Positions 4,826 to 59,940 of a stretch of 64,000 nucleotides of DNA are shown here, piece by piece. Positions within the stretch are counted from its first letter, which is position 1, and every line of letters begins with the position of its first letter. A model generated the notes under the pieces. The model had not been told where the DNA came from and did no database searches. It was given only the letters and a program-made list of their open reading frames with translations. The position numbers and the translations under genes are program-made. The stretch lies in assembly GCA_964270895.1 (NCBI GenBank), contig OZ185438.1, one strand, 5' to 3'. Origin of the DNA: Podarcis filfolensis (lineage: Eukaryota).

Positions 4826-5059
4826 CAGTGGTACCTCTGGTTAAGTACTTAATTCGTTCCGGAGGTCCATTCTTAACCTGAAACTGTTCTTAACCTGAAG
4901 CACCACTTTAGCTAATGGGGCCTCCCGCTGCCGCCGGAGCACGATTTCTGTTCTTATTCTGAAGCAAAGTTCTTCACCCGAGGTAATATTACTGGGTTAG
5001 CGGAGTCTGTAACCTGAAGCGTATGTAACCTGAAGCGTATGTAACCCGAGGTACCACTG
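4826..5059. mobile_element. Tc1/mariner (pogo/Tigger-like) MITE, family A
   Basis: TIRs cagtggtacctc...gaggtaccactg, TA target duplication, internal (gtaacctgaa) repeats. Confidence 0.88.
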
Positions 5060-5188
5060 TAGTCCGTTTTGAAAGGTGCCACAGGACTCCTTAGCTATGC
5101 ATAGATTTCAGGAAGATTACTCCCAAATATGCCTAAGATCGTAATTCTACTCTTTGCTGCGAGACCAAACATGGCTGTTCTCTTAGAT

Positions 5189-12123: not shown

Positions 12124-13908
12124 ATAATTCCTCCCTCCCCTCAGAAAAAAATGGGCCAGTTGGCTCACACAGCTTTTGCGGCAAAACATCAACTACTTAA
12201 TGGAACAGTTGTGAAACTGGCAGTTTCTGTTTTGTTCTCTTGTTAGACACATGTATAAACCAGGCACTTATACAGGTCACTTACTTGCAACACTAAGTCT
12301 ACAGTCCTACCCATCCTTACCACTGGTATACTTCTGAGTAAACATGGACACAATTATGCTCTAGGTTTCCTGAAGACATAGAAGTTACTGGACAAAACAG
12401 CTTTTCTATGCCATTTGGAAAAGTAAATGTCACTGCTATTTGGTTGACAATAGAAATGGTCATAATTTGAACGATAAGAAGCAGAACACATCACCTATTG
12501 TGTTCTATTTATAACGGTTGATATCAGGAGTCGTCTTTTTGTCTCTGGTTAATGCTTTTACAGGGGAAAGTAGGGAATGACTCAAAGGGCATTTAATCCC
12601 TTTAAAGGCACAAGATGTCAATGGAATAGGTTAGTATGTCCAATTGTTATCCTTAAAAAAAACCCACCTTCAGTGACATCTTAAACTCTGCAGGGAGTGA
12701 AGGGCAAATAATACACAGACAGGATCAGGCTGAATTCTCCATAGCTTGTTTTGTCCCATGAAACCTAATTGAAACAGGCTGCAATTGACAGGACTCTTGC
12801 AAAATCGCTCCCACTAAGGAACTGGGATTACCAAGTTTAGTTCCCATTTCAAGAAGTGGTGCTCTGCATGTGGTAGCAAATCTTGTTTATCATGCCCAAA
12901 ATAAAGTAGGCTGGGCTCTATAGAAAGAAGCGAGATGGCCCAATATTTCTCTGGTGCAGAAGAAATTTTCTCTCTTTTCTCCCTCTGAAATAGACATATC
13001 TTCCAGCAACCACTTCTTCATTCTATACTCTCCCCATGACTGAAGGCATTTTGCTAGCTTTGTTAAAAAAAAAAATCGGGAACAATTGTCCTTGGCTTGC
13101 TTGAATTATTAGGCTTACTTTATTATACTATTTTAAACAAACAAAAATTAAAATGGAAAGGGAACTTGTGGTGCGTGAGGGAGAGCAGTTTCAATAGCCA
13201 GACCACTATTCTGAGCTTAGATGCGGAAAGAGAGAATTAGCTTATGTAACCTCAGTCAGGGAAAAGTCGCTTCGAAATTCTTCAAAAAGCTGTTTGCATA
13301 TGGTATTCAGTATTTGACAGTTTATCATGCTACACTCCATAAATAGAATTGCGTGTTTTATATCAGGCAACCATAACTTCCAAAAATGTCATCATTAACT
13401 ACCATACCAAGCGATCGAGAGACTGGCATGCTTAATCATCTCTTTATTATTTTCTGCAGGGCTTTTACTGCATCTGGTTGTAGGGGGCACAGGGACACAC
13501 ACACACAAGAAACAAAAGCTGGAACAAGCAGAGGAGGAGTCCCAGATTTAACATGTTGCTATTTCTGTAAATCAGGCTGATTTAATGTCATGTCACAACT
13601 TCGTTGATCTATAAGCAGATTCCCGCCTCACCTTCCATTGTTCACATAGCAGCTACAACACAACATTTAATGTTGGGCCCCCAAAGTCTAGAGCAGATGA
13701 TGTTTTGGGATAAAGTTTGCTGTTGGATGATAGACAGATGGATAGATAACAAACTTTACAATTAAAGATCCTTAAGGCTATGATTGACTGTGATGGCTGT
13801 CACTGGTTTACAGATATTATATTAGCCATTTTGATTTAACAAACCTGAAAACAATTTGTATAAAGCTATGTGGATTAGAGCGGTTCATTAAAAAGTCTTT
13901 TTGAAAAA

Positions 13909-14154
13909 GCCTGCTCCAAAGGTCTTACCTTACTACACTAGGGATTATATAGCTATATCTGAAATTTCATGCATATCAGTTAATATCTTGACCCTCCTCC
14001 ACGAAAATAGCTGTTTACTTGGCTGTTTTCCTATGTCATGAAGGCTGAAATTTCAATTCAGTGGAGCAGGGTAAAGATATTAACTGATATGCATGAAATT
14101 TCAGATATAGCTATATAATTCCTAGTGTAGTAAGACAAGACCTTTGGAGCAGGC
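13909..14154. repeat. long inverted repeat (94-bp arms, 58-bp spacer), unclassified foldback/MITE-like
   Basis: 13909-14002 is the reverse complement of 14061-14154 with 5 mismatches by manual comparison; imperfect A/T-rich extension to about 13884/14183. Confidence 0.85.
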
Positions 14155-14351
14155 ATTTTTTTTAAAAAAAGTTTTTTTATGAAGGGACAAAAGTTCCAGA
14201 GCATCCCTACTAGGAACTGAGTCTTGCTGAACTCAGCAGGAATTTATTTCTGGGTAAATATGCAGAGAATTTAAAAGTGCTATATTCCACATTTCCACCA
14301 AATATAAGTCTCCAAGGCAGCCCACAACAAATAGGTGCCATCCATTACAAC

Positions 14352-19479: not shown

Positions 19480-19626
19480 AGCTGGGTTAGCTCAGTTGGT
19501 GGAGCATGAGACTCTTACTCTCAGGGTTGTGGGTTTGAGCCCCACATTGGCCAAAGAGATTCCTAGATTGCATGGGATTGGACTAGATGACCCATGTGGT
19601 CCCATCCAATTCTACAATTCTATGAT
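19480..19626 (+). mobile_element. tRNA(Lys)-derived SINE with CR1-type (ATTCTATG) tail (Squam2-like)
   Basis: gctgggttagctcagttggtggagcatgagactctt... is tRNA-Lys(CTT)-like, joined to ctagatgaccc...ttctacaattctatgat. Confidence 0.8.
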
Positions 19627-21483: not shown

Positions 21484-21837
21484 GGTAAAGGTAAAGGGAC
21501 CCCTGACCATTAGGTCCAGTCGTGACTGACTCTAGGGTTGCGGCGCTCATCTCGCTTTATGGGCCGAGGGAGCCGGCGTACAGCTTCTGGGTCATGTGGC
21601 CAGCATGACTAAGCTGCTTCTAGCGAACCAGAGCAGCGCACGGAAACGCCGTTTACCTTCCCGCTGGAGCGGTACCTATTTATCTACTCGCACTTTGATG
21701 TGCTTTGGAACTGCTAGGTTGGCAGGAGCAGGGACCGAGCAACGGGAGCTCACCCTGTTGCGGGGATTCGAACTGCCGACCTTCTGATCAGCAAGTCCTG
21801 GGCTCTGTGGTTTAACCCACAGCGCCACCCACGTCCC
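21484..21837 (-). mobile_element. Sauria SINE, full length
   Basis: Reverse-complement consensus; TSD atcacatctatta at 21471-21483 and 21838-21850. Confidence 0.93.
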
Positions 21838-30869: not shown

Positions 30870-32114
30870 GGGAAGTTCTGCCACTTCCCAAGTCATCCCA
30901 AGTTCAAGCACTGGCTCAAAGGACAGGTGGGTGAACAAATCGAGAATGCAGCTTCCACAGTGCTACCCTGTATTAAAGGAGGCAGTGTTACAGAAAGTGC
31001 ACACAGTTCTGTTTCTTGCTACAGGAGAAACATTGCTCTGGCATCTGAGTATAACTTGCAGAGAACCTGTTCGGTGCTAAACTACAAAGGCTGGTGTGGC
31101 TTTTTAAAAGGAAGAATGCATGAATACTGATTAACCAGATGTTCCTTGTCAAAATTATCACAGCTGGGAGAAAAAAAATGTCACTGATAAATATCAAACT
31201 GCCAAAAAAAGCAACCACAAGCGCCTAATATATGCTTATGTTCTCAGGCAGGAAAAAAACACTCCTAGAAACTTTGAACCTTTGTATCTTCTGAAGAAAC
31301 AATGAAATGCCACTTAACAACACACACACACAAATATACTACAAGATACAACTTTATCCCAATCAGAAAAGATGTTTCTATATCGGACTATCTTCAACTT
31401 ATTTCTATGGGTGATAATTCAACTAAGTCATGCTGTCGTTCTGGCCAGTAGAATTCTGTATCAATTCATTTTCAGTTCTAATTTAAGATTCTGGTATTAG
31501 TCTTTAAAGTCCTAAGTGTGGGTCGAGGTTATCTTAACAACCACCTGCACCTATATGAACCTGCCTGAGCTTTTAAGGTGCCTGGCTCCCTGCTTAGAGC
31601 TGTAATACTGACAAGCATTAAAGGACAAAGCCTTTTCTGTGGTGACCCCATATCCTTGGAATCATCCCCCCCTAAAAAAAAAAATACACATGGCATCTTC
31701 TTTGCTACGTCTTTAGGAGAGACTTGGAGACTTTTGTTGTTGTTGCTCAAGTCTTATTTTGGGTAATTTTATGGTGTTGTACTTTAATTATAGTTTTTAC
31801 TGCTGCTGCTGCTATTTTAATTTTGTTTCTGCAAGCAGCTTTGAGACCCAGATGAGGTAGTTTTAAAACAAATAAATGATCCGGAGTTTTTAGTATATAG
31901 TTATTTATTACTGACTATGTTGTGAGATGCCATTTAAGGAAAGATAATCTTAAAGCTGGGGAAAAAACCCAACAAGGCCCGTCTAGCTAGTAAACATATG
32001 AACAAATTTAACAACTGCCATACCCTGACAATTGTAAAAACCTGTTACCTGTGACTTTGTGTCACTGGAGGAACTGTTGCAGAATGAGACTATTGAAAAT
32101 GAGATTCTAAATTA

Positions 32115-32356
32115 CAGTGGTACCTCAGGTTAAGTACTTAATTCGTTCTGGAGGTCCGTACTTAACCTGAAACTGTTCTTAACCTGAAGCACCACTTTAG
32201 CTAATGGGGCCTCCTGCTGCCGCTGCATCGCCGCTGCACGATTTCTGTTCTCATCCTGAAGCAAAGTTCTTAACCTGAAGCAGTATTTCTGGGTTAGCAG
32301 AGTCTGTAACCTGAAGCGTATGTAACCTGAAGTGAATGTAACCCGAGGTACCACTG
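32115..32356. mobile_element. Tc1/mariner MITE, family A
   Basis: cagtggtacctc TIRs, TA TSD. Confidence 0.88.
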
Positions 32357-32399
32357 TAGTTTATACAAACCACTAGAAAAATCCTTCAGGAGTGACAAT

Positions 32400-33227: not shown

Positions 33228-33324
33228 GGTGTGCTTTCGAACTGCTAGGTTGGCAGGAGCAGGGACCGAGAAACAAGAGCTTACCCTGTTGTGGGGATTC
33301 AAACCTCCAACCTTCCGATTGGGC
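33228..33324 (-). mobile_element. Sauria SINE fragment (3' part missing)
   Basis: Matches 37897-37993; abuts a C12 run and the RTEX-like fragment. Confidence 0.85.
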
Positions 33325-33883
33325 ACCACAAAACGAATTCCCTTAAATTCATGGGTTATTTGTACAAGATCTAGGGTTTCCCGAAGCAGCGCCCATGGGC
33401 AGCACAGCACCCAATGCCCCCTCGATGCCCATCAAAGCCCTCCGAACAAATAAATAAAATGTTGTCAGTTGTTGCCTACTTTCCTTTACCTTGATTAGCA
33501 GCAGGCTGGGCTAACTGGAAAAAAAGGAAGAGAAGGCTCCAAGCTGCCCCACCTTCTTCCCAGATAACCAGCTGTTGTTTCCTTTCTTGGAAAAGAAAGG
33601 GTCAAAAGGGGTTGGGGTGGCAAGGAGAGAGGGGAAAAAGAAACCGATATGCTCCACCTTGTATCCCCCCTCCAAATCTCTTCAGATAGGACCCTGCCAC
33701 TGGGGAATGAATGGGAGGCAGTAGGATGCAAAGTGAGTGCTGAGCCGGGGGGGTTCTTTTCGGAGTTTTTCTTTGCGTTTTGCCTCTCTTACTTAATTCT
33801 GGAGTAGGCGTGTGGGTCTTGGCCTCTTTTTTTGGTTTTGAAGTTGGGGGGGCGGCTTCCCTGTTTTGGGGGAGGGGGTTGTA

Positions 33884-34109
33884 CAGTGGTACCTCGGGTT
33901 ACATATGCTTCAGGTTACAGACTCCGCTAACCCAGAAATAGTGCTTCAGGTTAAGAACTTTGCTTCAGGATGAGAACACAAATCGTGCTCCGGCGGCGCG
34001 GCAGCAGCAGGAGGCCCCATTAGCTAAAGTGATGCTTCAGGTTAAGAACAGTTTCAGGTTAAGAACGGACCTCCGGAACAAATTAAGTACTTAACCCGAG
34101 GTACCACTG
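33884..34109. mobile_element. Tc1/mariner MITE, family A (in duplication copy 1)
   Basis: cagtggtacctc TIRs, TA TSD; counterpart at 38572-38821. Confidence 0.88.
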
Positions 34110-34695
34110 TACTCATTTTCTCAGGCAAGTTATTTGTTCTCTGGGACCAGATAGGCCCTCCAAGCGGTCATCTTGTTGTGGTTGCAAAACTGCCCCGTGA
34201 ACACCGATTTATGGCGGCGTTCACAACAGTTCTGCCGACTTCCAAACGTGCCCGCAGTCCCAAAAATGACCCACAAAAGAAGAAGCGGAAGGTATACAGA
34301 ATAGCGTGGGAGACATGAAAAGCGTGAACTTGGATGACGATAGTGACGGCTCCTTAGCACGATGCATGGGAGAGGAGGAGAGATTCCTCTGCTGAGTTTT
34401 AAGGGAGCAGGAAGATTTAGATTACGAGAAGGAAAATTTTACTTTCCAGTTCCCCAGTTCCAATGTCAGCCCACACCTGCCTACTTTAAATAATGAGCCT
34501 TCAGGGCATAAAATTACCTCTTTTACATAGCACTGTAAACTCCTAGGATTGGCTTGTTCCAAAATTAAAAGGTTTTCTCTCTTTCTCTTCTATTTCAAGT
34601 ATTGGAGTATTTCTTCTTTTCTTTCTTGTTCTTTATCTTCAGATATTAAACAAACGTTAATTTAAAAAATATTTCAAGAGGTGTATCTCTCTTAA

Positions 34696-34856
34696 AGACT
34701 ATCTGACTTTTAGAAGACATCTGAAGGCAGCCCTTTTTAGGGAAGTTTTTAATGTTTGATTGTTTTATCGTATTTTTAATGTTCTTTTGGGAGCTGCCCA
34801 GAGTGGCTGGGGAAACCCAGCCAGATGAGCAGGGTATAAATAATTATTATTATTAC
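34696..34856 (+). mobile_element. L2 LINE 3' end (copy 1; counterpart about 39408-39568)
   Basis: ctgaaggcagccctttttagggaagtttttaatg...cccagccagatgagcagggtataaataattatt, same family as 30561. Confidence 0.8.
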
Positions 34857-35130
34857 TTTAGGCACCCCAACCAGATCCTGAGCAGACCACAAGGGTCACA
34901 GGGTAGCCTACTTAATAGATTGGTTCTGCCTTACTCCAAATGTTCCTCACTGCTTTGTGGAGCAATCTGCTGAACAAACCAGGAAACTCCTTCCTTGATC
35001 CCTTGGAATTCAGCTTTTAAGAATGCACATTGTCCTTCCTTCCACATTTCTAGGCAGAGAAAGGCAATGAAGAGGATTTGGCCACAGGTTCCATATAAAC
35101 AAAAGAAGAGGGTGGAACTGAGAAATAAGA

Positions 35131-35343
35131 CAAAAAATTTTTTTTCCTTCCAGTAGCACCTTAAAGACCAACAGTTAGTTCTTGGTATGAGCTTTCGTGT
35201 GCATGCACACTTCTTCAGATACACTCCTTCAGATACACACGAAAGCTCATACCAAGAACTAACTGTTGGTCTTTAAGGTGCTACTGGAAGGAAAAAAAAA
35301 TTTTTGTTTTGACTATGGCAGACCAACACGGCTACCTATCTGT
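35131..35343. mobile_element. Penelope-like element (PLE) short insertion with inverted pseudo-LTR
   Basis: Perfect 15-bp TSD aactgagaaataaga (35116-35130, 35344-35358); empty site at about 39828-39842; arms 35131-35201 and 35236-35306 are inverted repeats; sequence resembles reptile PLE pLTRs (gaaagctcatacc...ctttaaggtgctactgga...ggcagaccaacacggctacc) and carries a hammerhead motif. Confidence 0.85.
35185..35222 (-). ncRNA. minimal type I hammerhead ribozyme motif
   Basis: Minus strand reads GUAU-CUGAAGA-A-GUGUGC-AU-GCACAC-GAAA-GC-UC-AUAC: stem I GUAU/AUAC, core CUGANGA, 6-bp stem II, GAAA, palindromic AGCU stem III and a CUC cleavage triplet. Confidence 0.85.
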
Positions 35344-36865
35344 AACTGAGAAATAAGAGTTCTGCTTGCAAAAGTACCTTCTCCAAAACAGAATCTGTGG
35401 CATTTTGGATATTATATAAGATGAGGGGAAATGAGTGGTGTGTGTGAAATCAACCAAGTCCCATGGATTTCACAGTTGGCAAATACACACTGCATAAAAA
35501 CAGAAAAGAATATTATGTTTACTCGCCTTTCCAATTCAATGTCTAAATCAAGACCATCGTGATCTGGGAATTTCCATGTTGGGTGCAGAATCACTGATCC
35601 TCTGTCTATAAGCTATCGTCACAGAATTTCAGTGTTTCACCCAGGCTCGGGTGGCAAGACACAATTCCCTTTACAACAGCTAAGTCCTATGTTTAAGGGA
35701 AAAGAGAAATAAATATCCGACTGGTCACCTGGTGCGTTGCAGTTATCCGCTCCAGCATGCAGATAATGGTTCATATATAGTGCAAGTCACTGCCAGTCTC
35801 AAAACTTTGAAGTTTGTATGAGATCTGGCCCTATCTGTTCTTTTGGCCTATTGATTTTCACATGAAAGAGCCGCTGCTGTTCTCAATTCACTTTTTCCAG
35901 AAGCATCGCAGCGCTGCTATCATTTGCGGGGGTGGGTGGGGTGGGGATTGGTTTCTAAACTGTGCAAATTTAACCTTGATCTTACCTACAAAGGACAAAA
36001 CTCCGAAACTTCTAATATTGCAAACCCGATTACTAATCCCCTAGAAAGCTATTACCTACTTTCTAAGGGAGTCTACTGTGTTGCTGTCTGTAAATGCTAT
36101 TACCGACCCTTCTGTCCTCTGAAAGGGAAACATGTATTCTAATCTGTATGATCAGAATACTGCAGATATTTTACAGTTTAAATAAAATTGCTAATTGGGC
36201 AGTGGGGGGGGGGGAAATCTCGCATAGATACAATACAATCAAGTTACTTATTTAGTTCGGGCATCACAGAAACAAATGTCACAACTGGTAGTATTCATAA
36301 TTTTTCTGTTCTTTCACAATCATAAATCTGATTGAGGAAATTGAGAGGAGTTAGGATTGCCAACTGGCCAATGAAACACGGCCTGCCCATGTCTCTTTAA
36401 GAGCAACTTGATATGCACGAATAACATCAAGTTAAAAACACAGCTAAGAAGGCTAGTTAAAACTTTGGCAACATCACAAGAGGAAAAGAAGAGAAGAATA
36501 GATTAGTGAAAGCCAGGCAAGGTTGAGAGTCAGGGATAAGGGAATGTAAATAAGCTGGATTATGACTCTGCCTTTTGCCCCTCGGTTGAAGAGCAGGGGC
36601 AGCTATTTAATAAATGATATGGATAAGGCAGGAAAAGCTGATTTCTTAAATGATACTGAAGGGCAAGGGATAGGGATAGCCTTACCAGATTTCTATCCAT
36701 CATGTAACATTACTTACAATAAATAAATAAAAAACAGGAGTAGCAATTTGTTCTATGTTTGGAGTCGCTTAAAAAATAATAATCGTATGGCTCGTGACTG
36801 CAGCCCACATAAGAAACAACAGGTGCTGTTTTCCCACTTAGCTTCAGAGACTGTTGAGAGCTGAT

Positions 36866-37065
36866 NNNNNNNNNNNNNNNNNNNNNNNNNNNNNNNNNNN
36901 NNNNNNNNNNNNNNNNNNNNNNNNNNNNNNNNNNNNNNNNNNNNNNNNNNNNNNNNNNNNNNNNNNNNNNNNNNNNNNNNNNNNNNNNNNNNNNNNNNNN
37001 NNNNNNNNNNNNNNNNNNNNNNNNNNNNNNNNNNNNNNNNNNNNNNNNNNNNNNNNNNNNNNNNN
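36866..37065. other. assembly gap (200 N)
   Basis: Run of N. Confidence 0.99.
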
Positions 37066-37684
37066 GTGTATGTTTAACTTACAGTAAGCATTCTAGGAAC
37101 TGATTTTGCTTCATCCTCTGAATTGTTGATATGTTCAGGAATTAATTTGAAGCTGAAGTGGGTTGAATGCTGAAAATACATGGTAAGATTTACTACATTT
37201 CTATCCTGCCTTTCCTACAAGGAGTTTTACATTCCCCCCGCCCCCCAGCCCATTTTATTTTTACAACAACCCTGTGAGGTAGATTGACCAGTGTTTGGAA
37301 AGTTCATTTTAAAAAGGAACTGCTTTTCCCCCGTTTATTCTGTGCAAAAATTTCCAGTCATACACTTGTAGTATAAAATGAATTCATAAAAAGCTCATGT
37401 AGGGTCTAAAAATAAATCAGGGGCAACACATAAGTAATAAAATGTCTGACAGATGAATGTCAGCAGATGCAGCTTTCCCCATAATTGTATTTTCAGACTA
37501 AGAAAGGTTTACCCTGTTTAATTTCTGCCTGCCACACAGCTGTTAGAGGCACAAGGCATCACTTGGTTCTTGTACCTGTATTTCCTGCTACAAACTGCTC
37601 CTGTGGGAAAAGAACAAATATCCTCATAGAGGAATATACAGTCATAACTCAGGTTACAGCCATTTCAGGTTGTGTTTTTTTTTG

Positions 37685-37993
37685 GGTAAAGATAAAGGGA
37701 CCCCTGACCATTAAGTCCAGTCGCAGACGACTCTGGGGTTGCGGCACTCATCTCGCTTTACTGGCCGAGGGAGCTGGCGTTTTTTCCGGGTCATGTGGGC
37801 CAGCATGACTAAGCCGCTTCTGGCAAAACCAGAGCAGCACACAGAAAACACCGTTTACCTTCCCGCCGGAGCGGTACCTATTTATCTACTTGCACTGGTG
37901 TGCTTTCGAAATGCTAGGTTGGCAGGAGCAGGGACCGAGCAACAAGAGCTTACCCTGTTGTGGGGATTCAAACCTCCAACCTTCCGATCGGGC
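37685..37993 (-). mobile_element. Sauria SINE, 5' head truncated
   Basis: Tail ggtaaagataaagggacccc at 37685; similarity is lost after ccttccgatcgggca. Confidence 0.88.
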
Positions 37994-40900
37994 ACCACAA
38001 AACAAATTCCCTTAAATTCATGGGTTATTTATACAAGATCTAGGGTTTCCCGAAGCAGCGCCCATGGGCAGCACAGCACCCAATGCCCCCTCGATGCCCA
38101 TCAAAGCCCTCCGAACAAAAAAATAAAATGAACAAATAAATAAAATGTTGTCAGTTGTTGCCTACTTTCATTTACCTTGATTAGCAGCAGGCTGGGCTAA
38201 CTGGAAAAAAGGAAGAGAAGGCTCCAAGCTGCCGCACCTTCTTCCCAGATAACCAGCTGTTGTTTTCTTTCTTGGAAAAGAAAGGGTCAAAAGGGGTTGG
38301 GGTGGCAAGGAGAGAGGGGAAAAAGAAACCGATATGCTCCACCTTGCATCCTCCCTCCAAATCTCTTCAGATAGGACCCTGCCACTGGGGAATGAATGAG
38401 AGGCAGTAGGATGCAAAGTGAGTGCTGAGCCGGGGGGGGGGGTTCTTTTTGGAGTTTTTCTTTGCGTTTTGCCTCTCTTATTTAATTCTGGAGTTGGCGT
38501 GTGGGTCTTGGCCTCTTTTTTTGGTTTTGAAGTTGGGGGGCGGCTTCCCTGTTTTGGGGGAGGGGGTTGTACAGTGGTACCTCGGGTTACATATGCTTCA
38601 GGTTACATACACTTCAGGTTACAGGTTACTATTTCAGGCTAACCCAGAAATAGTGCTTCAGGTTAAGAACTTTGCTTCAGGATGAGAACAGAAATCGTGC
38701 TCCGGCGGCGCGGCAGCAGCAGGAGGCCCCATTAGCTAAAGTGATGCTTCAGGTTAAGAACAGTTTCAGGTTAAGAACGGACCTCCGGAACAAATTAAGT
38801 ACTTAACCCGAGGTACCACTGTACTCATTTTCTCAGGCAAGTTATTTGTTCTCTGGGACCAGATAGGCCCTCCAAGCGGTCATCTTGTTGTGATTGGAAA
38901 ACTGCCCCGTGAACACCGATTTATGGCGGTGCTCACAACAGTTCTGCCGACTTCCAAACGTGCCCGCAGTCCCAAAAATGACCCACAGAAGAAGAAGCAG
39001 AAGGTATACAGAATAGCGTGGGAGACATGAAAAGCGTGAACTTGGATGACGATAGTGACGGCTCCTTAGCACGATGCATGGGAGAGGAGGAGAGATTCCT
39101 CTGCTGAGTTTTAAGGGAGCAGGAAGATTTAGATTACGAGAAGGAAAATTTTACTTTCCAGTTCCCCAGTTCCAATGTCAGCCCACATCTGCCTACTTTA
39201 AATAATGAGCCTTCAGGGCATAAAATTACCTCTTTTACATAGCACTGTAAACTCCTAGGATTGGCTTGTTCCAAAATTAAAAGGTTTTCTCTCTTTCTCT
39301 TCTATTTTAAGTATTGGATTATTTCTTCTTTTCTTTCTTGTTCTTTATCTTCAGATATTAAACAAACGTTAATTTAAAAAATATTTCAAGAGGTGTATCT
39401 CTCTTAAAGACTACCTGACTTTTAGAAGACATCTGAAGGCAGCCCTTTTTAGGGAAGTTTTTAATGTTTGATTGTTTTATCGTATTTTTAATGTTCTTTT
39501 GGGAGCTGCCCAGAGTGGCTGGGGAAACCCAGCCAGATGAGCAGGGTATAAATAATAATTATTATTACTTTAGGCACCCCAACCAGATCCTGAGCAGACC
39601 ACAAGGGTCACAGGGTAGCCTACTTAATAGATTGGTTCTGCCTTACTCCAAATGTTCCTCACTGCTTTGTGGAGCAATCTGCTGAACAAACCAGGAAACT
39701 CCTTCCTTGATCCCTTGGAATTCAGCTTTTAAGAATGCCCATTGTCCTTCCTTCCACATTTCTAGGCACAGAAAGGCAATGAAGAGGATTTGGCCACAGG
39801 TTCCATATAAACAAAAGAAGAGGGTGGAACTGAGAAATAAGAGTTCTGCTTCCAAAAGTACTTCTCCAAAACAGAATCTGTGGCATTTTGGATATTATAT
39901 AAGAAGAGGGGAAATGAGTGGTGTGTGTGAGATCAACCAAGTCCCATGGATTTCACAGTTGGCAAATACACACTGCATAAAAACAGAAAAGAATACTATG
40001 CTTACTCGCCTTTCCAATTCAATGTCTAAATCAAGACCATTGTGATCTGGGAATTTCCATGTTGGGTGCAGAATCACTGATCCTCTGTCGATAAGCTATC
40101 GTCACAGAATTTCAGTGTTTCACCCAGGCTCGGGTGGCAAGACACAATTCCCTTTACAACAGCTAAGTCCTATGTTTAAGGGAAAAGAGAAATAAATATC
40201 CGACTGGTCACCTGGTGCGTTGCAGTTATCCCCTCCAGCATGCAGATAATGGTTCATATATAGTGCAAGTCACTGCCAGTCTCAAAACTTTGAAGTTTGT
40301 ATGAGATCTGGCCCTATCTGTTCTTTTGGCCTATTGATTTTCACATGAAAGAGCCGCTGCTGTTCTCAATTCACTTTTTCCAGAAGCATTGCAGCGCTGC
40401 TATCATTTGCGGGGGTGGGGGTGGGGTGGGGATTGGTTTCTAAACTGTGCAAATTTAACCTTGATCTTACCTACAAAGGACAAAACTCCGAAACTTCTAA
40501 TATTGCAAACCCGATTACTAATCCCCTAGAAAGCTATTACCTACTTTCTAAGGGAGTCTACTGTGTTGCTGTCTGTAAATGCTATTACCAACCCTTCTGT
40601 CCTCTGAAAGGGAAACATGTATTCTAATCTGTACGATCAGAATACTGCAGATATTTTACAGTTTAAATAAAATTGCAAATTGGGCAGTGGGGTGGGAATC
40701 TCGCATAGATACAATACAATCAAGTTACTTATTTAGTTCGGGCATCACAGAAACAAATGTCACAACTGGTAGTATTCATAATTTTTCTGTTCTTTCACAA
40801 TCATAAATCTGATTGAGGAAATTGAGAGGAGTTAGGATTGCCAACTGGCCAATGAAAGACAGCCTGCCCATGTCTCTTTAAGAGCAACTTGATATGCACG

Positions 40901-41352
40901 AATAACATCAAGGTGCAGTTAAAAACACAGCTAAGAAGGCTAGTTAAAACTTTGGCAACATCACAAGAGGAAAAGAAGAGAAGAATAGATTAGTGAAAGC
41001 CAGGCAAGGTTGAGAGTCAGGGATAAGGGAATGTAAATAAGCTGGATTATGACTCTGCCTTTTGCCCCTCGGTTGAAGAGCAGGGGCAGCTATTTAATAA
41101 ATGATATGGATAAGGCAGGAAAAGCTGATTTCTTAAATGATACTGAAGGGCAAGGGATAGGGATAGCCTTACCAGATTTCTATCCATCATGTAACATTAC
41201 TTACAGTAAATAAATAAAAAACAGGACTAGCAATTTGTTCTATGTTTGGAGTCGCTTAAAAAATAATAATCATATGGCTCGTGACTGCAGCCCACATAAG
41301 AAACAACAGGTGCAGTTTTCCCACTTAGCTTCAGAGACTGTTGAGAGCTGAT
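37897..41352 (+). repeat. segmental direct repeat, copy 2
   Basis: Near-identical to 33228-36865; lacks the PLE insertion; several small indels and substitutions. Confidence 0.95.
38572..38821. mobile_element. Tc1/mariner MITE, family A (in duplication copy 2)
   Basis: TIRs and TA TSD; carries extra ttcaggttac units relative to 33884-34109. Confidence 0.88.
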
Positions 41353-41455: not shown

Positions 41456-41809
41456 GGAGGGATGCGGGTGGCGCTATGGGTTAAACTACAGAGCCTAGGA
41501 CTTGCCGATCAGAAGGTTGGCGGTTCGAATCCCCGCGATGGGGTGAGCTCCCGTTGCTCAGTCCCTGCTCCTGCCAACCTAGCAGTTCCAAAGCACATCA
41601 AAGTGCAAGTAAATAGGTACCGCTCCGGCGGGAAGGTAAATGGCTTTTCCGTGTGCTGCTCTGGTTCGCCAGAAGCGGCTTAGTCATGCTGGCCACATGA
41701 CCTGGAAGCTGTACGCCAGCTCCCTTGGCCAATAAAGCGAGATGAGCGCCGCAACCCCAGAGTCGGTCACAACTGGACCTAATGGTCAGGGGTCCCTTTA
41801 CCTTTACTT
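41456..41809 (+). mobile_element. Sauria SINE, full length
   Basis: Consensus; TSD agtacctgt at 41447-41455 and 41810-41818. Confidence 0.92.
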
Positions 41810-43688: not shown

Positions 43689-46126
43689 TCACCATGAAGT
43701 CCCATGGCAGGTTACAGCAATGTAAAAAAATACGTGTTAAAATCAGTTAATAAAGAATTACAGTCAAGAGACTAGGGTGGATGCTAAACCATATACCTCA
43801 GGAAAGAGTAAAGATTTGTGTCTTCAGTATACAACTAAAGCGATACCATTGAAGTGCCGGGTGCACCTCTGTGGTGAGGGAATTCCATAGCTGAAGGGTC
43901 TTCTGAGCCACCACTGCCATAATTTCCAAGGGCAGTAGTGCTACCAAGAGGACCCCCCTCTGCACATCATAACACTGTAGAAGAGGTGGTCTTTCAGACT
44001 GCTGTTAAAAGTTTTAGTTGAAAAATACCTAATAATCAGTTACTGATTGCAACCCAAATGCTTTTCCTAAAAAAGGGGAAAATATTAGAGGGACACAGCT
44101 AATCTTCCTCCACTCCCAGGTCAGGTTAATCTTTAGGTACTGCAAGCATATTATATTATATTATATAACCATGTTTTATAATTAAAGGCAATGGACTCTT
44201 AAACTAAGGCCATGGCTGATACGTAGCTTTGTGGGGAGCTGGTAAAAGAGAAAACTTCTCCTTCAGAGCACTTCATTCATTATAGCACCAAAACAAAGAA
44301 ACAACTATACTAATTGAATGTAAAAGGACCAGACAGGAAGGATGAAAGAAACTGACAGCTTGTGGGAATGAGAGTGAGGTACAAGGAGAATGGGAGAAAA
44401 ATTACAGGAGATGGGTAAAAATATATTGAGAGACATGTTGGGGTGAGAAGGAAAAGAGTTAAATGAAAACATCTCCCTGCAGTATAACTTAAGGAAAGCC
44501 AAGTTATTGAACTCCCTGTCACAAGGGAAATGCTTTGGCGAAGAATTTAGCAATTTCTAAAGATGGATTAGAGATCATTTTTAAAAAATGCTAAACACTG
44601 CCTCCATCTACCACCAATTTTTGAATGGCTCTGCCACTGCACCACCATTTTGTGACTAGTGGACCTCAGTAATTTTCAGCTGCCTTAAGTGAACACTGAG
44701 GATAGGTTTTAAAACCTTCTGCACCTGACCTCTTCATGATCAAACATAATAATTAAAAAACTGTAAAAAGGGTTAAAGAAATTGGAAAGCATGTCAAAAG
44801 TTCTTTTAAGTATTTGGAGACGCTCTACAAAACGCACATATACTAAAACAGTAATATACCTGAAATGAGGCATTTGCTCTAAAAAACAAACACTGCTGTG
44901 ATGAATAGTTGAACATTACAGGTACATTTGGAATATTATTTCAACCATGACAGCTTTTGCGGTTAAAATGCACCATTGCATTCATAGGGAAGAAGATACT
45001 AAAACTCATGCTACATCTTTTTTCATGACCCTAACAAAAAGGAGATGCGTACTCAAATAATCAGCTATCTCCCAAGGGAAAAGACCACATAGTTGCCCCA
45101 AAACAGTACTGAGAAAGTGTATATAGAGTATTAGAGCATTTCAGATCCTACTTAAATCTACTCAGAAGTAAGCCTCGTTGTTCAGTGTAAATTACTCCTG
45201 GGTAAGTACATATAGGATTGCAGCCTGAAAAACATAGTGGACGTTGCAGAAGCACTACAGATTCACTAAGAAGGAGAAGTCGTTCTCCCGTATTATTCAG
45301 GGGTCTAGCCAAAGATCAAGCAAAAAAAGGTTTAAGCTTGAATTGGTGTAGCTTAAGAAACATAAGAATGATTAAAAAACCAGGAGCTGATCATAAAGAA
45401 TATTAAGCAAGTTTAACAATGTGATTCTTTATGCTGACGTAGTCAACAATAGCTTATCATACCCTAAAAATAAACAGGGTTAGAAATCCAGCAGCAATAT
45501 GGACTATGGCTTGATTAAAAAGCAAACTTACCCCTATTGTTGGACTTCCAAGGCTCCCTCCTTTTTAAATTTTGCTATATTGTATTTTGATTGTTGACTG
45601 TACTACTGTGTCAAAGACTAATGACAGAATGCTATAAATTGCTAAACAATATGCTGTTGCAGACTTGTCAATCTAATGGCACCTTCAGAGCTATCTGAAT
45701 ACAGTATCTGAGCACGAATCCAATCATGTCGTTTCTGCTTTTAAAACTCAAATAGAGAGTCCTGCAGGATTAGATGTGGAAATCATTCAAAAATATGGAT
45801 TAGTTTCATAAATAGTTCCAACTCTGACACAAACCCTGAGCTACATCCTGGTCTGCTCTCAACGTGGGAGGAAAGGAACATATTTTGTTCCAGCAAGAAT
45901 GAGACTAGCTGCTGCCTGAGCTGCCTTTGGTCCAAGCCCCATTAGCATGGGGTAAAAATCTGTCTCACATGATTAATTATAATTTTAAAATGCATATGTA
46001 TACAGAAAGAGAGAGAAAAAATAGCAACACAGTCCTAACTATGCCTACTCAGAAGTCTATTGGATTCAGTAGGGCTTACTTCCAGATTAAGTAGGGTGAG
46101 GATTTTCATTGTAAATAAAAACAACA

Positions 46127-46340
46127 CAGTGGTACCTTGGGTTAAGAACTTAATTTGTTCTGGAGGTCTGTTCTTAACCTGAAACTGTTCTTAACCTGAG
46201 GTACCACTTTAGTTAACGGGGCCTCCTGCTGCAGCCGCTTGATTTCTGTTCTCATCCTGAAGCAAAGTTCTTAACCCGAGGTACTATTTCTGGGTTAGGG
46301 AGTCTGTAACCTGAAGTGTCTGTAACCTGAGGTACCACTG
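46127..46340. mobile_element. Tc1/mariner MITE, family A
   Basis: cagtggtacct TIRs and family A body. Confidence 0.85.
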
Positions 46341-47500: not shown

Positions 47501-47725
47501 AAATTGTAAATCCAGACTTCCTTTAGTTAACAGACTTATACATTTAATTTTTGAATGTCACATAGAGCCTAAGTGATTATGATGCTCAGTAAGAGTCTAG
47601 CCTACGAATGTTATAACCTAGATTGCTCACAGGAAAATCCTTCCACAAAGGATACCGAGATAAAATTAAGTTAGCTAGCTATGGTCACACCTTTCCTTCA
47701 AACCTTTTCAGAAAGCTTATTTCTA

Positions 47726-47966
47726 CAGTGGTACCTCAGGTTAAGTACTTAATTCGTTCCGGAGGTCCGTTCTTAACCTGAAACTGTTCTTAATCTGAAG
47801 CACCACTTTAGCCATTGGGCCCCCTGCTGCTGCCGCGCTGCCGGAGCTCAATTTCTGTTCTCATCCTGAAGCAAAGTTCTTAACCTGAGGTAATATTTCT
47901 GGGTTAGCAGAGTCTGTAACCTGAAGCGTACGTAACCTGAAGCGTATGTAACCCGAGGTACCACTG
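47726..47966. mobile_element. Tc1/mariner MITE, family A
   Basis: TIRs and TA TSD. Confidence 0.88.
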
Positions 47967-50262
47967 TATTTCCTTTGTCTTTCTCAAGCCATTCCCTACT
48001 TCGCGTGTTTTGAAATGCGTCCTGAAGAACAAGATCATGCTTAGCTTTCCTTACTGACACCATTGCCTATAGAAAGCTTTAAACCCTGAACAGCATTAAA
48101 TCCTAGGTGGAAATGAGCGCTCAAGGTAATTTGTTATCCAAGGTGCACATCTTAAGTCACTAAGCAAATAATGTTCTGAGCAACAGTCAAACCAGAGTGC
48201 TTAACCGTTAAGGCACGTTTCACAAAATTTCCAAGCACTTCACTTTCAAGTCATTGTTGGCGTACACTTCCATCATTTCTGAGAAACACTGTTAAGAAGG
48301 GAGATTCCTAAAAAGACAGTATCTTCTGTTAACAGACACCTATGGGCTTCACCTGAAGTAGCAATGTTCAGCAACAGACCAAATTTAAGCAGTACACGAG
48401 CAGCATGGGACCAATCCATACAAGAATAAAGATCAGTAATTTGTTCCCGGGACTTGCTTGAACTCTGCATAATGGTACCAGTAGAAACTACAATAATCAA
48501 TAAGAGATGGGAATTCGTCCTCATGCAGCTCTATGCTCTGTATTGTCTACCTGTGGCTCTCCAGATGTTGTTGGACCAGAACTCCCCAGCTAGCATCACC
48601 AAGGGTCAGGGCTGATGAGACTCCAATAACACCATGGCAGACTCCCGGTGCCCCATCCCTGATCTTTTTTAAAAAAAACCAAAGCTCTACACAGGAGCAC
48701 ACCCCCCCAAACGGAAAGTACTCCAAAACAGTTCAATTCCACAAGCCCATCCATAATTTGAGGTGCACCTTCTCCAGTTGTCCCCATCTTCAAAGGTTAG
48801 GCGGCTGGTGAGCAGACCTTTTCAGTGATGACACACAGTTGGTTTTATCAATTAAACTTTGTGGATTTCTTGTGTCAGTAGGCCAAAGTCTGAGGACAGA
48901 AGACAGGATGGCAGTTTAACGGAAACCAAGTAGGAATTCTGGCATATGTTCTTAGATAGTTATACTGGCTTTTAAATTTAACAAACATACATGCTGAAGA
49001 TTATTTTGGTTTATTTGCTGAAGCATTCAGCCTCACAAGAGAACAGGGAAGTTTTGCATTCCCAGTCCTTCTGATATTTTGGGCAGCCAGAAGAAAGCCA
49101 TGTAGAGTTTCCGTCACCCACCTGAATCCAGCCTAAACCTTTTGGGGAAGGAAAGGCCTTGGAAACAAGAGTCTGTCTCCAGGCACGACCAACCTAGAAA
49201 ACTGCCTTCTTTACATGCTTTTCAAGAGTAGCTCACGTTGGTGGAATTCCTTCCACAAATCCTCCTTGCGAGCGACTTCTTTCTGCCCTTGACCACATCA
49301 ATGCAAGCGCTTGTTCTGTCCTAGGGCAGTACAACAAACCTCTCAGTGGTATGCATAGTTTCATTTGAGATGTTATATTGCACACATTCCACTCCTAGCA
49401 GAGCATCAGTAAGCTCCAGAATTTGAATGATGTCTGCTCCATCAATGAATATAGATAACAGTGGGTGACTCATGCTGTAGCTGAGAAGTCTTCTATGCAT
49501 TACATTAAGTCACTGTTTTATATCCGGGGGCATTCTTACCGCAAAAGACAGTGAAGGAGGGCATACCTAACTTCTGCGTTCAGAGAAACCATCAAAATTC
49601 CTACCCTGTGTTTGGCCATCAAGTTATGAAGAGTGCACTACATGCTTTTTAAATTAATGCCAGTCTTTTTCTTTATTTCTTTCTTTTGACACCCTGGTTG
49701 TTTAGCTACAAAATAATGTTTTATTGTTCTGACTTTTGTTCACTTTTCTCCATAGTTAAACATCTCCATAGCAGAAGGTCTCCAATTGTCTTTGAATAGA
49801 TGGTCTTTATTGTTTAATCACTCTTCAATCACTACAAGTAAACAAGCACCTTTAGCAAATGCTGTCTGCACATTAGACATCTGATCACAGCAATGTGTTT
49901 CCATTTGTTTTCTTGTGTGCTGATGGGCTTCCTTAAATTCTGTTATTATTCTGGTAATTCTGGGTCCAACTAAACATTGTTATGACTGAGGTAAAGTGCC
50001 ACGGCTGGGGTACTGGTAAACTAACTAGGTTCAAACAGATCTTAAGACCTCTTAAAGAGACACCGTGAAATATTATCTAGAATGTTGGACTTGAGATCTA
50101 GGAGACCCAAGTTAAAATGTCTGCTGAGCCATGAAGCTCACGATGTACCGTTGAATCAATAGGCTAGCCTATGCCACACAACTGTTGTGATGATAAGTCA
50201 AGACTTCTACTCTTCTATTTCCTTGGATAGGAAAGCAAGATTGAAAGCTTATAAACACTATA

Positions 50263-50941: not shown

Positions 50942-51758
50942 AAACCATGCTTACAGAGGGGGTGGCAGCCCTTAAAAATCACTCCTGAGGCTCAGAGGGA
51001 ATTTCCAAAAAGGTTGTTTCATGCTAAACTGAAGCAGGGGGAAATTGCTGACCTCAACACGCCATAGATGCAAGTGAATGTACATAATCAGAACATTAAT
51101 TCTTTAGGATCCTATGCATAGAGATCCTATGTTACCTTCATTAAGTTACCGCTGTCTTTCAAACTAATGTTATTATTGTGTTATAGATCAGTTTTCACTT
51201 AAGGAAAGTCAAGTCCATGAGAAAGCCTTCACCCACCACCACTACTATTCATTTCTGCATAGCAGTTCCAACCCCTACCCCCCAAAAACAGAATCCTCAG
51301 GCTGAATTCCTGAGTCTCAAACTTGCCTTGCCCTCCCAGAGCAAAATAATCATGGTGATATAAAAAGCTCAGAAAAAGGCAAATTGTTTTGAATATTTTA
51401 TTAAAAAACAGCTTATAAATCACCCCCTGAATCTAAAGAGACAGCAACATTCTGAGATTAATTAAAGCGTTATAGAATGAAATCTTATCTGACTCTGGAG
51501 TCAGCATACGTCCTAGGTGTTTTATCTTCTTAAAATTCCATTACATGTTTTGCTTTTATTGTGATATGCGATAATACCAAATTCCTAGCAAGCAGAATAG
51601 TAGCCCGGGGGCATAGCAGAAATGAACAAACACCAGACACTAAATTCTGCATCTAACCAACCCCTACGCAACGGCCCCAGGATTTAGGCTGCTCTGCTGA
51701 GCAGTATAGTTACTTCTGAAAGCAATAACCCTAAATCTCTTTCTACCCCAGTAGCCTA

Positions 51759-52118
51759 AAGGTAAAGGTACCCCTGACCATTAGGTTCAGTTGCGGACGA
51801 CTCTGGGGTAATGGCGCTCATCTCGTTCTATAGGCCGAGGAAGCCAGCGTTTGTCCACAGACAGCTTCCAGGTCATGTGGCCAGCATGACTAAGCTGCTT
51901 CTGGCGAACCAGAGCAACCCACGGAAATGCCGTTTACCTTCCCACCGGAGCGGTACCTATTTATCTACTTGCACTTTGATGTGCTTTCGAACTGCTAGGT
52001 GGGCAGGAGCTGGGACCGAGCAATGGGAGCTCACCCCGCTGCGAGGATTCGAACAGCCAACCTTCTGATCAGCAAACCCTAGGCTCTGTGGTTTAGACCA
52101 CAGCGCCACCCGCGTCCC
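51759..52118 (-). mobile_element. Sauria SINE, full length
   Basis: 15-bp TSD taccccagYagccta at 51744-51758 and 52119-52133. Confidence 0.92.
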
Positions 52119-55972: not shown

Positions 55973-56328
55973 AGGTAAAGGTAAAGGGACCCCTGACCGT
56001 TAGGTCCAGTCGTGGCCGACTCTGGGGTTGCGGCGCTCATCTCGCTTTATTGGCTGAGGGAGCCGGCGTATAGCTTCCGGTTCATGTGGCCACCATGACT
56101 AAGCTGCTTCTGGCGAACCAGAGCAGCGCACAGAAACACCATTTACCTTCCCACCGGAGCAGTACCTATTTATCTACTCGCACTTTGACATGCTTTCGAA
56201 CTGCTAGGTTGACAGGAGCAGGGACCAAGCAAAGGGAGCTCACCCCGTTGTGGGGATTCGAACCGCCGACCTTCTGATTGCCAAGTCCTAGGCTCTGTGG
56301 TTTAACCCACAGCGCCACCCGCGTCCCC
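55973..56328 (-). mobile_element. Sauria SINE, full length
   Basis: 13-bp TSD gttgcttgYggta at 55960-55972 and 56329-56341. Confidence 0.92.
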
Positions 56329-57143: not shown

Positions 57144-58543
57144 GCTAGATGGGAAAATGGAAGATAGAATCACATCTTAATAGTAGAAACGTAAAAATCT
57201 CCGGAAACATTTAAAGCTGTGGAGAAAAACTTGTTTTCCCATATTTCCCCACCACATTTCATTGGGAGGGAGGACACACACAAAATGGGTAGTGGGGAAG
57301 ATATGTGCAATATTTACTTCCTTATCCAAACGAAACTTTATTAGTTGCTCGAACAAATGAAATGCATCACTTTTAACTTAATTAAAATATAAAATTGTAC
57401 CATTTGGCCTATTTAAAACCATAAATGACTTTGTTTCATACCAACAAACTTGTGAATATACCCAGTTGTGCTCCACTTCCTTGTACAAGTCACCCAAATG
57501 GTTGAATCTTTTCCTCTGAGGTTTTGCCACCCATAAGGAGAATTTCTGAAGTTTCTGCCCTGCTTTCTTCTGACCTTTTTACTACCCAGCAAGGCAGGGC
57601 AATAACCTGATTGACTCCCAATGTGTAGGAGGGTGATTAGGAGACATGAAAAAGGTTAACCAGGAAGAGGTAGGTCAAGAGGAAAGCCGAAGCAGGCTAT
57701 TTGCTTCCAGCATCTCCAAACTAGATCAAAAGTCACTAGAAAAAGGCAATAGGCACTTCATGTGCGATGACGGCTTTTTATACTCCTGTCAGGAAGAGGG
57801 CAGCACCCTTGAGGCACAGAAATGCATCTTTGACTAGTTAGCTGTATGCCAGGATTGTGATTCTCTAATGCCATAGAGTATTTTACATTTTTAAAAAGTG
57901 TTTAAAAACATTGTACTCATTCTAAAAATATATATTTCAAAAGGTTTTTAAGTGTTCCCCCAAACTTCCAATTTTTCGAATAATTCTGAGAAGAAACACA
58001 AATGAGTAAGGACCATTTCCCTCCTTGAATGTTCCCAGAGTTTATTTCCCAGGATTTCATATCTCTACTCAACAGATGTGCAATAAGTTTGGTTTTTGTT
58101 TTTAAAAAGCAAATTGGCTAAACAGTCAACTTAAGACCCCTTCAATGGCTAAAGTATCTGTCCCTTACTGCTTGTGATACTGTTCGAGAATGGAGTTTTG
58201 TCCTTCGCTTAATTAAAAGTAACACATTTCAGAGGCCTATACACACTTTAAGCAGGATAAACCTTTCCCCACAGCTGAAGACTTTGGTTATTGACTTCTG
58301 CTGTTTATCCTTGGACATTTGCCAGGAAAATGTTTTGACTGTAGTTAAGAGAAATGATACATCGCTACATTTCAACAACAGCAGCATAGAGGAATGTGGC
58401 TTTTGGTGTATTATTAAACTCGTCACTGTTAGCTATACATGAAAATGTATTGCTTCACAAAATACCCACTCTTGTAATTTGGCCATGTCACACTGGCGAT
58501 TAATCTCAACAGAATACATTCTAGAGGTCTAAACACAATATTG

Positions 58544-58681
58544 CAGTGGTTCTCAACCTGTGGGTCCCCAGATGTTGTTGGACTACAACTCCCATCATCC
58601 CTGAGCTCTGGCCTTGCTAGCTAGGGGTGATGGGAGTTGTAGTTCAACAACACATAGGGACCCACAGGTTGAGAACCGCTG
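58544..58681. mobile_element. palindromic hAT MITE (138 bp)
   Basis: TIRs cagtggttctcaacctgtgggtccc / gggacccacaggttgagaaccgctg; perfect 8-bp TSD caatattg at 58536-58543 and 58682-58689. Confidence 0.9.
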
Positions 58682-59033
58682 CAATATTGGAACTGGGGTG
58701 GGAATAGACATGCCACTAGAACTTAAATCCCCTCTGTCGTAAGCTAGTTTAGTCAACTACTGACTTTTCATGAAATTGTTCATGGCATGAGAGCAGGAGG
58801 TCTGAAGACCCAGCAAAGGTCCAGGGCAGACCAATAGCCTTGTATACTTTCTGTCATCTCCTCCTGTCTCTGAGCCACTGCTGAGTCACTGTCTGAGAGC
58901 CAACCTAAAGGCTTGCCTTCAGGTCCACCGTGACCTTTGCTCTTGATGCCCAAAGGCAAAGGGGGAGAATCAGAGGATCTAAGCAGGGCTCAAAATTATT
59001 GTGGGAGCCAGGCAACAGGTCCTCCTGCAAATA

Positions 59034-59731: not shown

Positions 59732-59940
59732 CAGCGGTACCTCAGGTTACATATGCTTCAGGTTACAGACTCCGCTAACCCAGAAATATTACCTCAGGTT
59801 AAGAACTTTGCTTCAGGATGAGAACAGAAATTGTGCTCCGGCGGCACGGCGGCAGCGGGAGGCCCCATTAGCTAAAGTGGTGCTTCAGGTTAAGAACGGA
59901 CCTCCGGAACGAATTAAGTACTTAACCTGAGGTACCACTG
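59732..59940. mobile_element. Tc1/mariner MITE, family A
   Basis: TIRs and TA TSD. Confidence 0.88.

Follow-up and report, generated by a model that had tools for sequence, protein, structure and literature searches.

A minimal hammerhead motif on the NCK2-sense strand of Podarcis filfolensis is probably the passenger of a young Penelope-like element insertion

Introduction

Does a hammerhead ribozyme motif that lies on the sense strand of a host gene, and in one arm of a long inverted repeat, act in the expression of that gene, or is it simply what a mobile element left behind on integration? This question is raised by a locus in a stretch of 64,000 nucleotides from Podarcis filfolensis (NCBI GenBank assembly GCA_964270895.1, contig OZ185438.1), which is referred to as the window in the following and which contains part of NCK2 on its minus strand. 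A preliminary description of the locus had proposed that the inverted architecture locks the ribozyme in a hairpin and thereby makes the insertion tolerable in a host intron, and that the ribozyme, once unfolded or dimerised, could cut the NCK2 intron in an allele-specific way.

Both parts of the locus, the motif and the inverted repeat, are familiar from Penelope-like elements (PLEs). Insertions of these elements show strong 5' truncation, often adjoin an inverted 5'-truncated copy and often bear a tail of 30-40 bp at one end only (Craig et al. 2021, PMC8557442). For PAc, a Poseidon element of Anolis carolinensis, the purified protein was reported to cleave and extend both target strands at AT-rich sites, and reverse transcription was reported to begin at two internal start sites, the sequence between which forms the tail of 30-40 bp (PMC11167929). 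The cut site of the PAc hammerhead lies 26 nt into the open reading frame and the reverse transcription (RT) starts lie at 111-118, i.e. 85-92 nt past the cut; cleavage by the hammerhead depended on addition of its protein, no RNA-seq reads ended at the hammerhead site, and catalytic mutants left insertion unaffected (PMC11167929).

The minimal hammerheads (min-HHRs) in the pseudo-LTRs of PLEs are characterized by an unpaired nucleotide before position 10.1, a G10.1-C11.1 pair, a long helix II (7-8 bp in Schistosoma, 6 bp in Drosophila virilis), a short helix I and palindromic positions 15.2/16.2 (Cervera & de la Pena 2014, PMC4209133). They occur in reptiles and are dispersed in thousands of copies, which are mostly single, with some opposite-strand pairs at a distance of 100-700 bp; single motifs showed no detectable self-cleavage, and dimers and trimers had low activity (PMC4209133). 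Cleavage by min-HHR dimers is attributed to Lunse, Weinberg & Breaker 2016, as cited in PMC6765202.

Results and Discussion

The motif is a complete minimal type I hammerhead

On the minus strand, positions 35222-35185 read GUAU / CUGAAGA / A / GUGUGC-AU-GCACAC / GAAA / GC / UC / AUAC, which constitutes a complete, loop-less min-HHR of type I with a length of 38 nt. All invariant hammerhead positions are present, with CUGAAGA at C3-A9, GAAA at G12-A15.1, U16.1 at 35190 and C17 at 35189, and cleavage is predicted between 35189 and 35188. Helix I (GUAU/AUAC) comprises 4 bp and is open, in keeping with type I topology; the next outward pair would be U versus C and does not form. Helix II (GUGUGC/GCACAC) can be drawn either with 6 bp and a 2-nt loop or with 5 bp and a 4-nt loop, is closed by G10.1-C11.1 (G35210 pairing with C35197), is preceded by a single unpaired A at 35211, and its sequence, GUGUGCAUGCACAC, is a perfect 14-nt palindrome. 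The hairpin of helix III is absent; A15.1-G15.2-C16.2-U16.1 form the palindrome AGCU at 35193-35190 with no loop 3, and a 4-bp helix III can be drawn only between two copies of the motif, via this palindrome. In this element family, core position 7 is an A.

A min-HHR descriptor applied to both strands of the 64-kb window matched once, at 35185-35222 on the minus strand, and matched none of 300 simulated windows generated with a first-order Markov model. Together with the core nucleotides and the AGCU palindrome without a loop, this bears out the preliminary description, which had recognized a PLE-type minimal hammerhead on the NCK2-sense strand. The same description had suggested an Infernal-type search with hammerhead models. 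As expected for a motif lacking the helix III hairpin, which the Rfam models require, none of Hammerhead_1, Hammerhead_3, Hammerhead_II, HH9 and HH10 matched the window at the gathering threshold or the interval 35000-35450 at E<=10. A full-text literature search with the motif sequence likewise gave no match.

Compared with the published min-HHRs of PLEs (PMC4209133), nothing of substance differs. The type I topology, the CUGANGA and GAAA boxes, the unpaired nucleotide, the G10.1-C11.1 pair, an open helix I of 4-5 bp, the long helix II, the missing loop 3, the palindromic 15.2/16.2 positions and even the opposite-strand pairing are shared, with the qualification that the partner arm is here cut off within helix II, leaving one full motif. 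The amniote intronic hammerheads HH9 and HH10 are a different case: they have the canonical form, including loop-loop contacts and a hairpin at helix III, they have been conserved between species, and Rfam models detect them (de la Pena & Garcia-Robles 2010, as cited in PMC7229834). The present motif resembles them in lying on the sense strand of what is plausibly a host-gene intron, but it has no Rfam match, and the insertion that carries it is absent from a second copy of the surrounding segment.

Two truncated element copies lie head to head between target-site duplications

The motif sits within an insertion of 210 bp (35131-35340), which is flanked by an 18-bp target-site duplication (TSD). 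The left copy (35113-35130, TGGAACTGAGAAATAAGA) and the right copy (35341-35358, TGTAACTGAGAAATAAGA) are identical at 17 of 18 positions, the mismatch being at 35343 in the right copy, and the target site is AT-rich (GAAATAAGA). The corresponding empty site is found in the window itself, at 39825-39842 in the second copy of a duplicated segment of 3.6 kb, where the 18-mer, identical to the left TSD copy, occurs once with nothing between the flanks. Here, identity is 100% between 35100-35130 and 39812-39842 and 96% between 35341-35367 and 39825-39851; in the longer alignments, 33228-35130 corresponds to 37897-39842 and 35341-36865 to 39825-41352. From the TSD and the precise empty site we conclude that the insert is exactly 35131-35340.

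Inside the insertion, two 5'-truncated copies of one PLE family are arranged head to head with their 3' ends outward, and they give rise to an inverted repeat with arms of 78 nt (35127-35204 and 35233-35310, 96% complementary) and a spacer of 28 nt. The left copy (35131-35226, minus strand) has its 3' end at 35131, bears no tail and contains the full hammerhead plus about 3 nt of the canonical sequence upstream of it, family reads matching it up to 35225. The right copy (35236-35340, plus strand) begins within the 3' strand of helix II (CACACGAAAGCUCAUACC), has no CUGANGA box and ends in an AC-rich tail of 34 nt (35307-35340, ...GGCAGACCAACACGGCUACC...), which extends past the end of the left arm and which belongs to the family according to the read depth in the bin 35304-35347. 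The complete hammerhead is therefore present on one strand only, the partner arm being truncated inside helix II. The spacer contains a 14-nt tandem duplication (35207-35234, ACACTTCTTCAGAT / ACACTCCTTCAGAT), which on the minus strand repeats the 5' half of the hammerhead (GUAUCUGAAGNAGU). These comparisons agree with the preliminary description, according to which the motif is part of an inverted arrangement, the ribozyme's 3' half has its complement in the upstream arm, and CUGAAGA is missing from the plus-strand arm.

Over the region shared by the arms, 70 of 71 nucleotides are identical, the sole difference being an A/T within a homopolymer run (A8T6 versus A9T5), and both arms are without a TA that is present in most family reads (after 35172 and 35264). 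Since the arms differ at 1 of 71 positions and lack the same TA, we conclude that they derive from one source in a recent event. At the same time, each arm has element sequence of its own, the 5' half of the hammerhead in the left arm and the tail in the right arm, which indicates that neither is a fold-back copy of the other and that both were copied independently from element RNA. Measured from the position of the cut site, the outer ends lie at 58 nt (no tail) and 92 nt (34-nt tail), distances that fit the two RT starts of PAc, although the PAc numbers are taken from the text of the paper and refer to an element of another species.

Taken together, the locus has a TSD with an empty site, 5' truncation with an adjoining inverted truncated copy and a tail at one end, as found in PLE insertions. 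In comparison with published PLE architecture and with PAc, the TSD, the head-to-head truncated arms, the one-sided 34-nt tail, the AT-rich target and the proposed use of both target strands as primers are alike, whereas the present copy differs in having neither an open reading frame nor a full pseudo-LTR, in its total length of 210 bp and in the A at core position 7. An open frame for reverse transcriptase plus GIY-YIG, as an autonomous element would carry, is found neither in nor beside the 210-bp copy, which is expected because the copy is truncated; the source could also be a non-autonomous derivative. Nor does the locus have the structure of a non-LTR retrozyme, which consists of two or more direct tandem units, each with a canonical type I hammerhead, and gives rise to circRNA, since it contains one complete motif with no other copy in the window, and its sole direct repeat is 14 nt long. 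A frame of 97 codons is open on the minus strand at 34931-35224, spanning the hammerhead and the left arm and running into the flank, and the frame is also open through the right arm and the tail. When the 34-aa peptide of the right arm was compared with 1.84 billion protein representatives, six repetitive proteins of odd composition were returned with 25-38% identity over multiple stretches and with no reverse transcriptase domain, and we see no evidence that the open frame at 34931-35224 is coding.

The segment around the insertion is present twice in the window, 4.7 kb apart (33228-36865 and 37897-41352), the two differing by indels and by mismatches at about 1.3-1.6%; an assembly gap of 200 N (36866-37065) cuts the first copy short. 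The copies further differ by the PLE insertion, which is in copy 1 only, and by a full versus a 5'-truncated SINE at the left boundary. They are possibly haplotypes that were assembled in tandem, or else a real tandem duplication. A DNA contig of run X1 over 35378-35900 is mosaic, agreeing with copy 2 at four sites and with copy 1 at three, and the contig across the filled right junction has a depth of 45 compared with 100.7 for the flank contig; the mosaic and the roughly halved junction depth favour alleles, whereas the 616 bp preceding copy 2 (37066-37681), which have no counterpart before copy 1, argue against them. The empty site may be the other allele.

The insertion belongs to an abundant and transcribed family

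The summed DNA word depth in the contigs of run X1 reaches 1.5-4 million over the element, compared with 72-100 in the unique flanks, and the copy number of the family is on the order of 10^4, depth not being an exact copy count. In raw RNA-seq data from two runs, about 3,500 reads per run fall on the stretch, and about 99% of these continue into sequence unlike the locus, from which we conclude that they come from other copies of the family and from the neighbouring repeat at 34688-34863. Transcripts of the family are plentiful, and they run in both directions. Over the hammerhead, reads match the present copy as far as 35225 and diverge from it there into an upstream sequence that they share with one another (296 and 197 reads, with an agreement of 0.92 and 0.89), from which we conclude that canonical copies extend beyond the 5' side of the ribozyme, as expected of a pseudo-LTR. 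A small share of the contigs of the family, both DNA and RNA, read through 35226 with a T; they amount to about 0.7% of the peak depth of the family and suggest a sub-family in which the 14-nt duplication was present beforehand.

The assignment to the PLEs is based on architecture, motif type and the literature; the source would be either a PLE itself or a non-autonomous derivative that a PLE mobilized. Among the supplementary sequences of the PAc paper, none matched the element. A degenerate hammerhead pattern gave four matches among metagenome contigs and none among viral contigs; the four matches are bacterial-looking and have no helix II, and they were rejected as family members and regarded as chance matches. 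Just left of the insertion, the repeat at 34688-34863 has a very high copy number of its own, with a DNA word depth of up to 13 million, which exceeds that of the PLE family, and with RNA reads in both directions.

The motif plausibly lies in the 5' intron of NCK2 and is predicted to be buried in a hairpin

The gene strand is set by the first coding exon of NCK2 (25213-24985, minus strand), which contains the start codon and the first SH3 domain, scores higher as NCK2 (133 bits) than as NCK1 (116 bits) and has NCK2 SH3 chains as its best PDB matches; a second coding exon lies within 6927-6130. Some 10 kb separate the start-codon exon from the motif, which lies upstream of it and in the sense orientation of the gene. 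RNA reads in the unique flanks are few and all have the first mate on the plus strand, as expected if the minus strand is transcribed and the library is of the standard stranded type. This handful of stranded reads makes a position inside the 5' intron of NCK2 plausible; no NCK2 exon was identified upstream of the motif. Across the whole window, Rfam models reach the gathering threshold only once, with a tRNA-like sequence of 44 bits at 19481-19553 (plus strand), which is antisense within the NCK2 intron between the two coding exons and which could be a tRNA gene or the head of a tRNA-derived SINE.

According to thermodynamic prediction, an RNA covering 35370-35100 folds into a hairpin with a minimum free energy of -138.8 kcal/mol (z -17.8). 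In this fold, the upstream arm takes up nucleotides 20-38 of the ribozyme with a pairing probability of at least 0.98, and helices I and II could form only at a cost of 30.6 kcal/mol. The sequestration of the 3' half of the ribozyme, as had been proposed, is thus reproduced as a prediction; it is, however, a trivial consequence of an inverted repeat of a kind that is routine in PLE integration. When two isolated 38-mers are combined, the double-hammerhead fold is predicted at -11.1 kcal/mol, compared with -30.6 kcal/mol for a competing dimer that forms via the palindromic helix II.

A proposed origin by priming from both target strands

We consider it highly probable, with a probability of roughly 0.85, that the locus is a young, single insertion of a PLE family in the form of two head-to-head truncated copies, with the hammerhead as a passive passenger and the hairpin as a by-product of integration. 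The target would have been cut on both strands with a stagger of 18 bp, whereupon each 3' end presumably primed reverse transcription of element RNA and the two internal PLE start sites would have been used, one of them giving the 34-nt tail and the other none. The two cDNAs would then have converged, one having passed the hammerhead and the other having stopped inside helix II, and would have been joined head to head, probably through a short microhomology of the ACAC/GUGU type, which the junction (...CAGAUACAC | ACGAAAG...) indeed offers. The expected product is that observed, i.e. two 5'-truncated copies with a 78-bp inverted repeat and a full min-HHR on one strand, this being the NCK2-sense strand by chance; transcribed within the NCK2 pre-mRNA, it would fold as a long hairpin. 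The 14-nt duplication at the junction is loosely explained by this sequence of events and may already have been present in the source RNA.

LINE-1 twin priming is a related process, in which inversion and 5' truncation arise when a second primer anneals internally on the same RNA, and which yields no long complementary arms. The two would have in common two cDNAs from staggered target strands, a join by microhomology and an inverted, truncated insert with a TSD; they differ in that both arms of the present insertion cover the same 3' region, which results in a long palindrome.

As an alternative to priming from both strands, a single cDNA could have folded back and primed itself at helix II, for which the perfect palindrome GUGUGCAUGCACAC would be suited. 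We regard this snap-back origin as quite unlikely and have rejected it, because the arms are not equivalent: of the element sequence, the tail at 35307-35340 is found in the right arm only, and the 5' half of the hammerhead in the left arm only. In addition, the centre of the inverted repeat (about 35218) does not coincide with that of the palindrome (about 35203), both outer ends abut the TSD at points where two PLE RT starts fit, and the tail belongs to the family by read depth. We give somewhat less weight still to an undescribed role at the DNA or RNA level, be it that the palindromic hammerhead region (helix II with its ACAC/GUGU flanks) is a preferred place for cDNA annealing, that transcribed intronic palindromes of the family supply dsRNA by which the family is silenced or the host gene influenced in an allele-specific way, or that a lock is under selection. 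If the annealing role were true, it would give the ribozyme sequence a function at the DNA level.

The ribozyme is expected to be silent

We expect the hammerhead to be catalytically silent at this locus, since it has no helix III, a helix I of 4 bp, no loop-loop contacts and no second motif in tandem, and lies buried within the hairpin. Cleavage assisted by the PLE protein is possible in cells where that protein is expressed, since the PAc hammerhead cleaved once its protein was added. In the RNA-seq data, 35189/35188 was not flagged as a pile of read ends, at depths over the motif of about 590 (run X23) and about 490 (run X24) reads, the threshold for a pile being a fifth of the local depth, so that minor cleavage below it is possible. 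These runs may come from an organism other than that of the window, and standard RNA-seq is not designed for 5'-OH and cyclic-phosphate ends. The sole flagged site was 35245 on the plus strand, where 8 read pairs begin in one run (with a depth of 23 beside it). This position lies 4 nt upstream of the right-arm counterpart of the cut site, and the read starts there are probably an effect of fragmentation or of the mapping of other copies.

Against this background, three functional readings can be weighed. In the first, the inverted arm would be retained, or such copies would preferentially survive, because it masks the sense-strand ribozyme, and the inverted form would be the one tolerated in introns; this is in line with the sequestration of the ribozyme 3' half in silico and with some selection against genic copies, a 2026 preprint having reported that retrozyme-type hammerhead repeats are depleted from Xenopus introns. 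Masking by an alternative fold is also known in principle, in that the hammerheads of viroids, satellite RNAs and newt satellite 2, whose helix III is unstable, show no activity as monomers or stable rods and become active only as transient double hammerheads (Forster 1988; Flores 2004, as cited in PMC4209133); their masking fold, however, is conserved and part of an RNA replication cycle, whereas the arm considered here is an accident of integration. Moreover, there is little to lock, because single min-HHRs are inactive in vitro and dimers are weak (PMC4209133), and the inverted form is the ordinary outcome of PLE integration at any location (PMC8557442), and the PAc protein cleaves and extends both strands (PMC11167929). 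The insertion is also young, with arms identical at 70 of 71 positions and a persisting empty site, which leaves little time for selection, and the strand that receives the full motif amounts to a coin toss, set by the points at which the cDNAs stop. We therefore consider a selected lock very improbable. Less probable still, and in our view close to negligible, is cleavage in trans or as a dimer with other transcripts of the family, by which the NCK2 pre-mRNA would be cut when it derives from the insertion-bearing chromosome only. Family transcripts are indeed abundant in both orientations, helix III can form between molecules via the AGCU palindrome, and the PAc hammerhead cleaves with its protein; but the double hammerhead at -11.1 kcal/mol would have to compete with the alternative dimer at -30.6 and the hairpin at -138.8 kcal/mol and has a helix I of 4 bp, the abundant antisense RNA of the family would equally compete, and read-end piles are missing both here, with several hundred family reads per run, and in the PAc data. 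Accordingly, the lock and the allele-specific cutting put forward in the preliminary description are unsupported and unlikely.

The third reading, which is compatible with a PLE origin, attributes activity to the hairpin itself, which as a near-perfect intronic dsRNA of 78 bp might be a substrate of ADAR or Dicer and thereby silence the PLE family or affect NCK2 processing. The hairpin is very stable, and reads in the flanks are consistent with transcription of the minus strand. Several models of miRNA precursors scored, purely on the basis of a long hairpin, but these and the other small-RNA models remained far below their gathering thresholds and were treated as noise. A>G differences occur in the reads, but the DNA contigs show them too, which points to variation within the family, and the locus itself is covered by few reads. 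On balance, we think that such a role is unlikely.

We thus return to a young insertion with a passive hammerhead, and in kind the feature is already known, i.e. an ordinary PLE insertion with a known min-HHR, and describing it is routine repeat annotation of a textbook case. Its modest value is that of a clean natural example, in which the empty site, the TSD, both RT starts and the junction can be read in one window, and which fits the action of a lizard PLE on both strands in vitro. If the copy is heterozygous, it would provide a natural test for the effect of an intronic PLE palindrome on NCK2 expression. The idea of a lock would become interesting only if a genome-wide bias in orientation and architecture were shown.

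Other repeats in the window

Apart from the insertion and the duplicated segment, the window contains two interspersed families. A SINE-like family of about 350 bp has at least seven copies in both orientations, which are 81-92% alike (705-1056, 3207-3557, 21486-21837, 37682-37991, 41459-41806, 51757-52118 and 55976-56327), and a second family of about 250 bp has copies that are 84-93% alike (4819-5063, 32113-32362, 33897-34111, 38570-38823, 46126-46330, 47724-47971 and 59742-59897). Two further stretches are palindromic in that they match their own reverse complement, namely 13884-14183 (about 300 bp, 80.5%) and 58536-58689 (about 154 bp, 86%).
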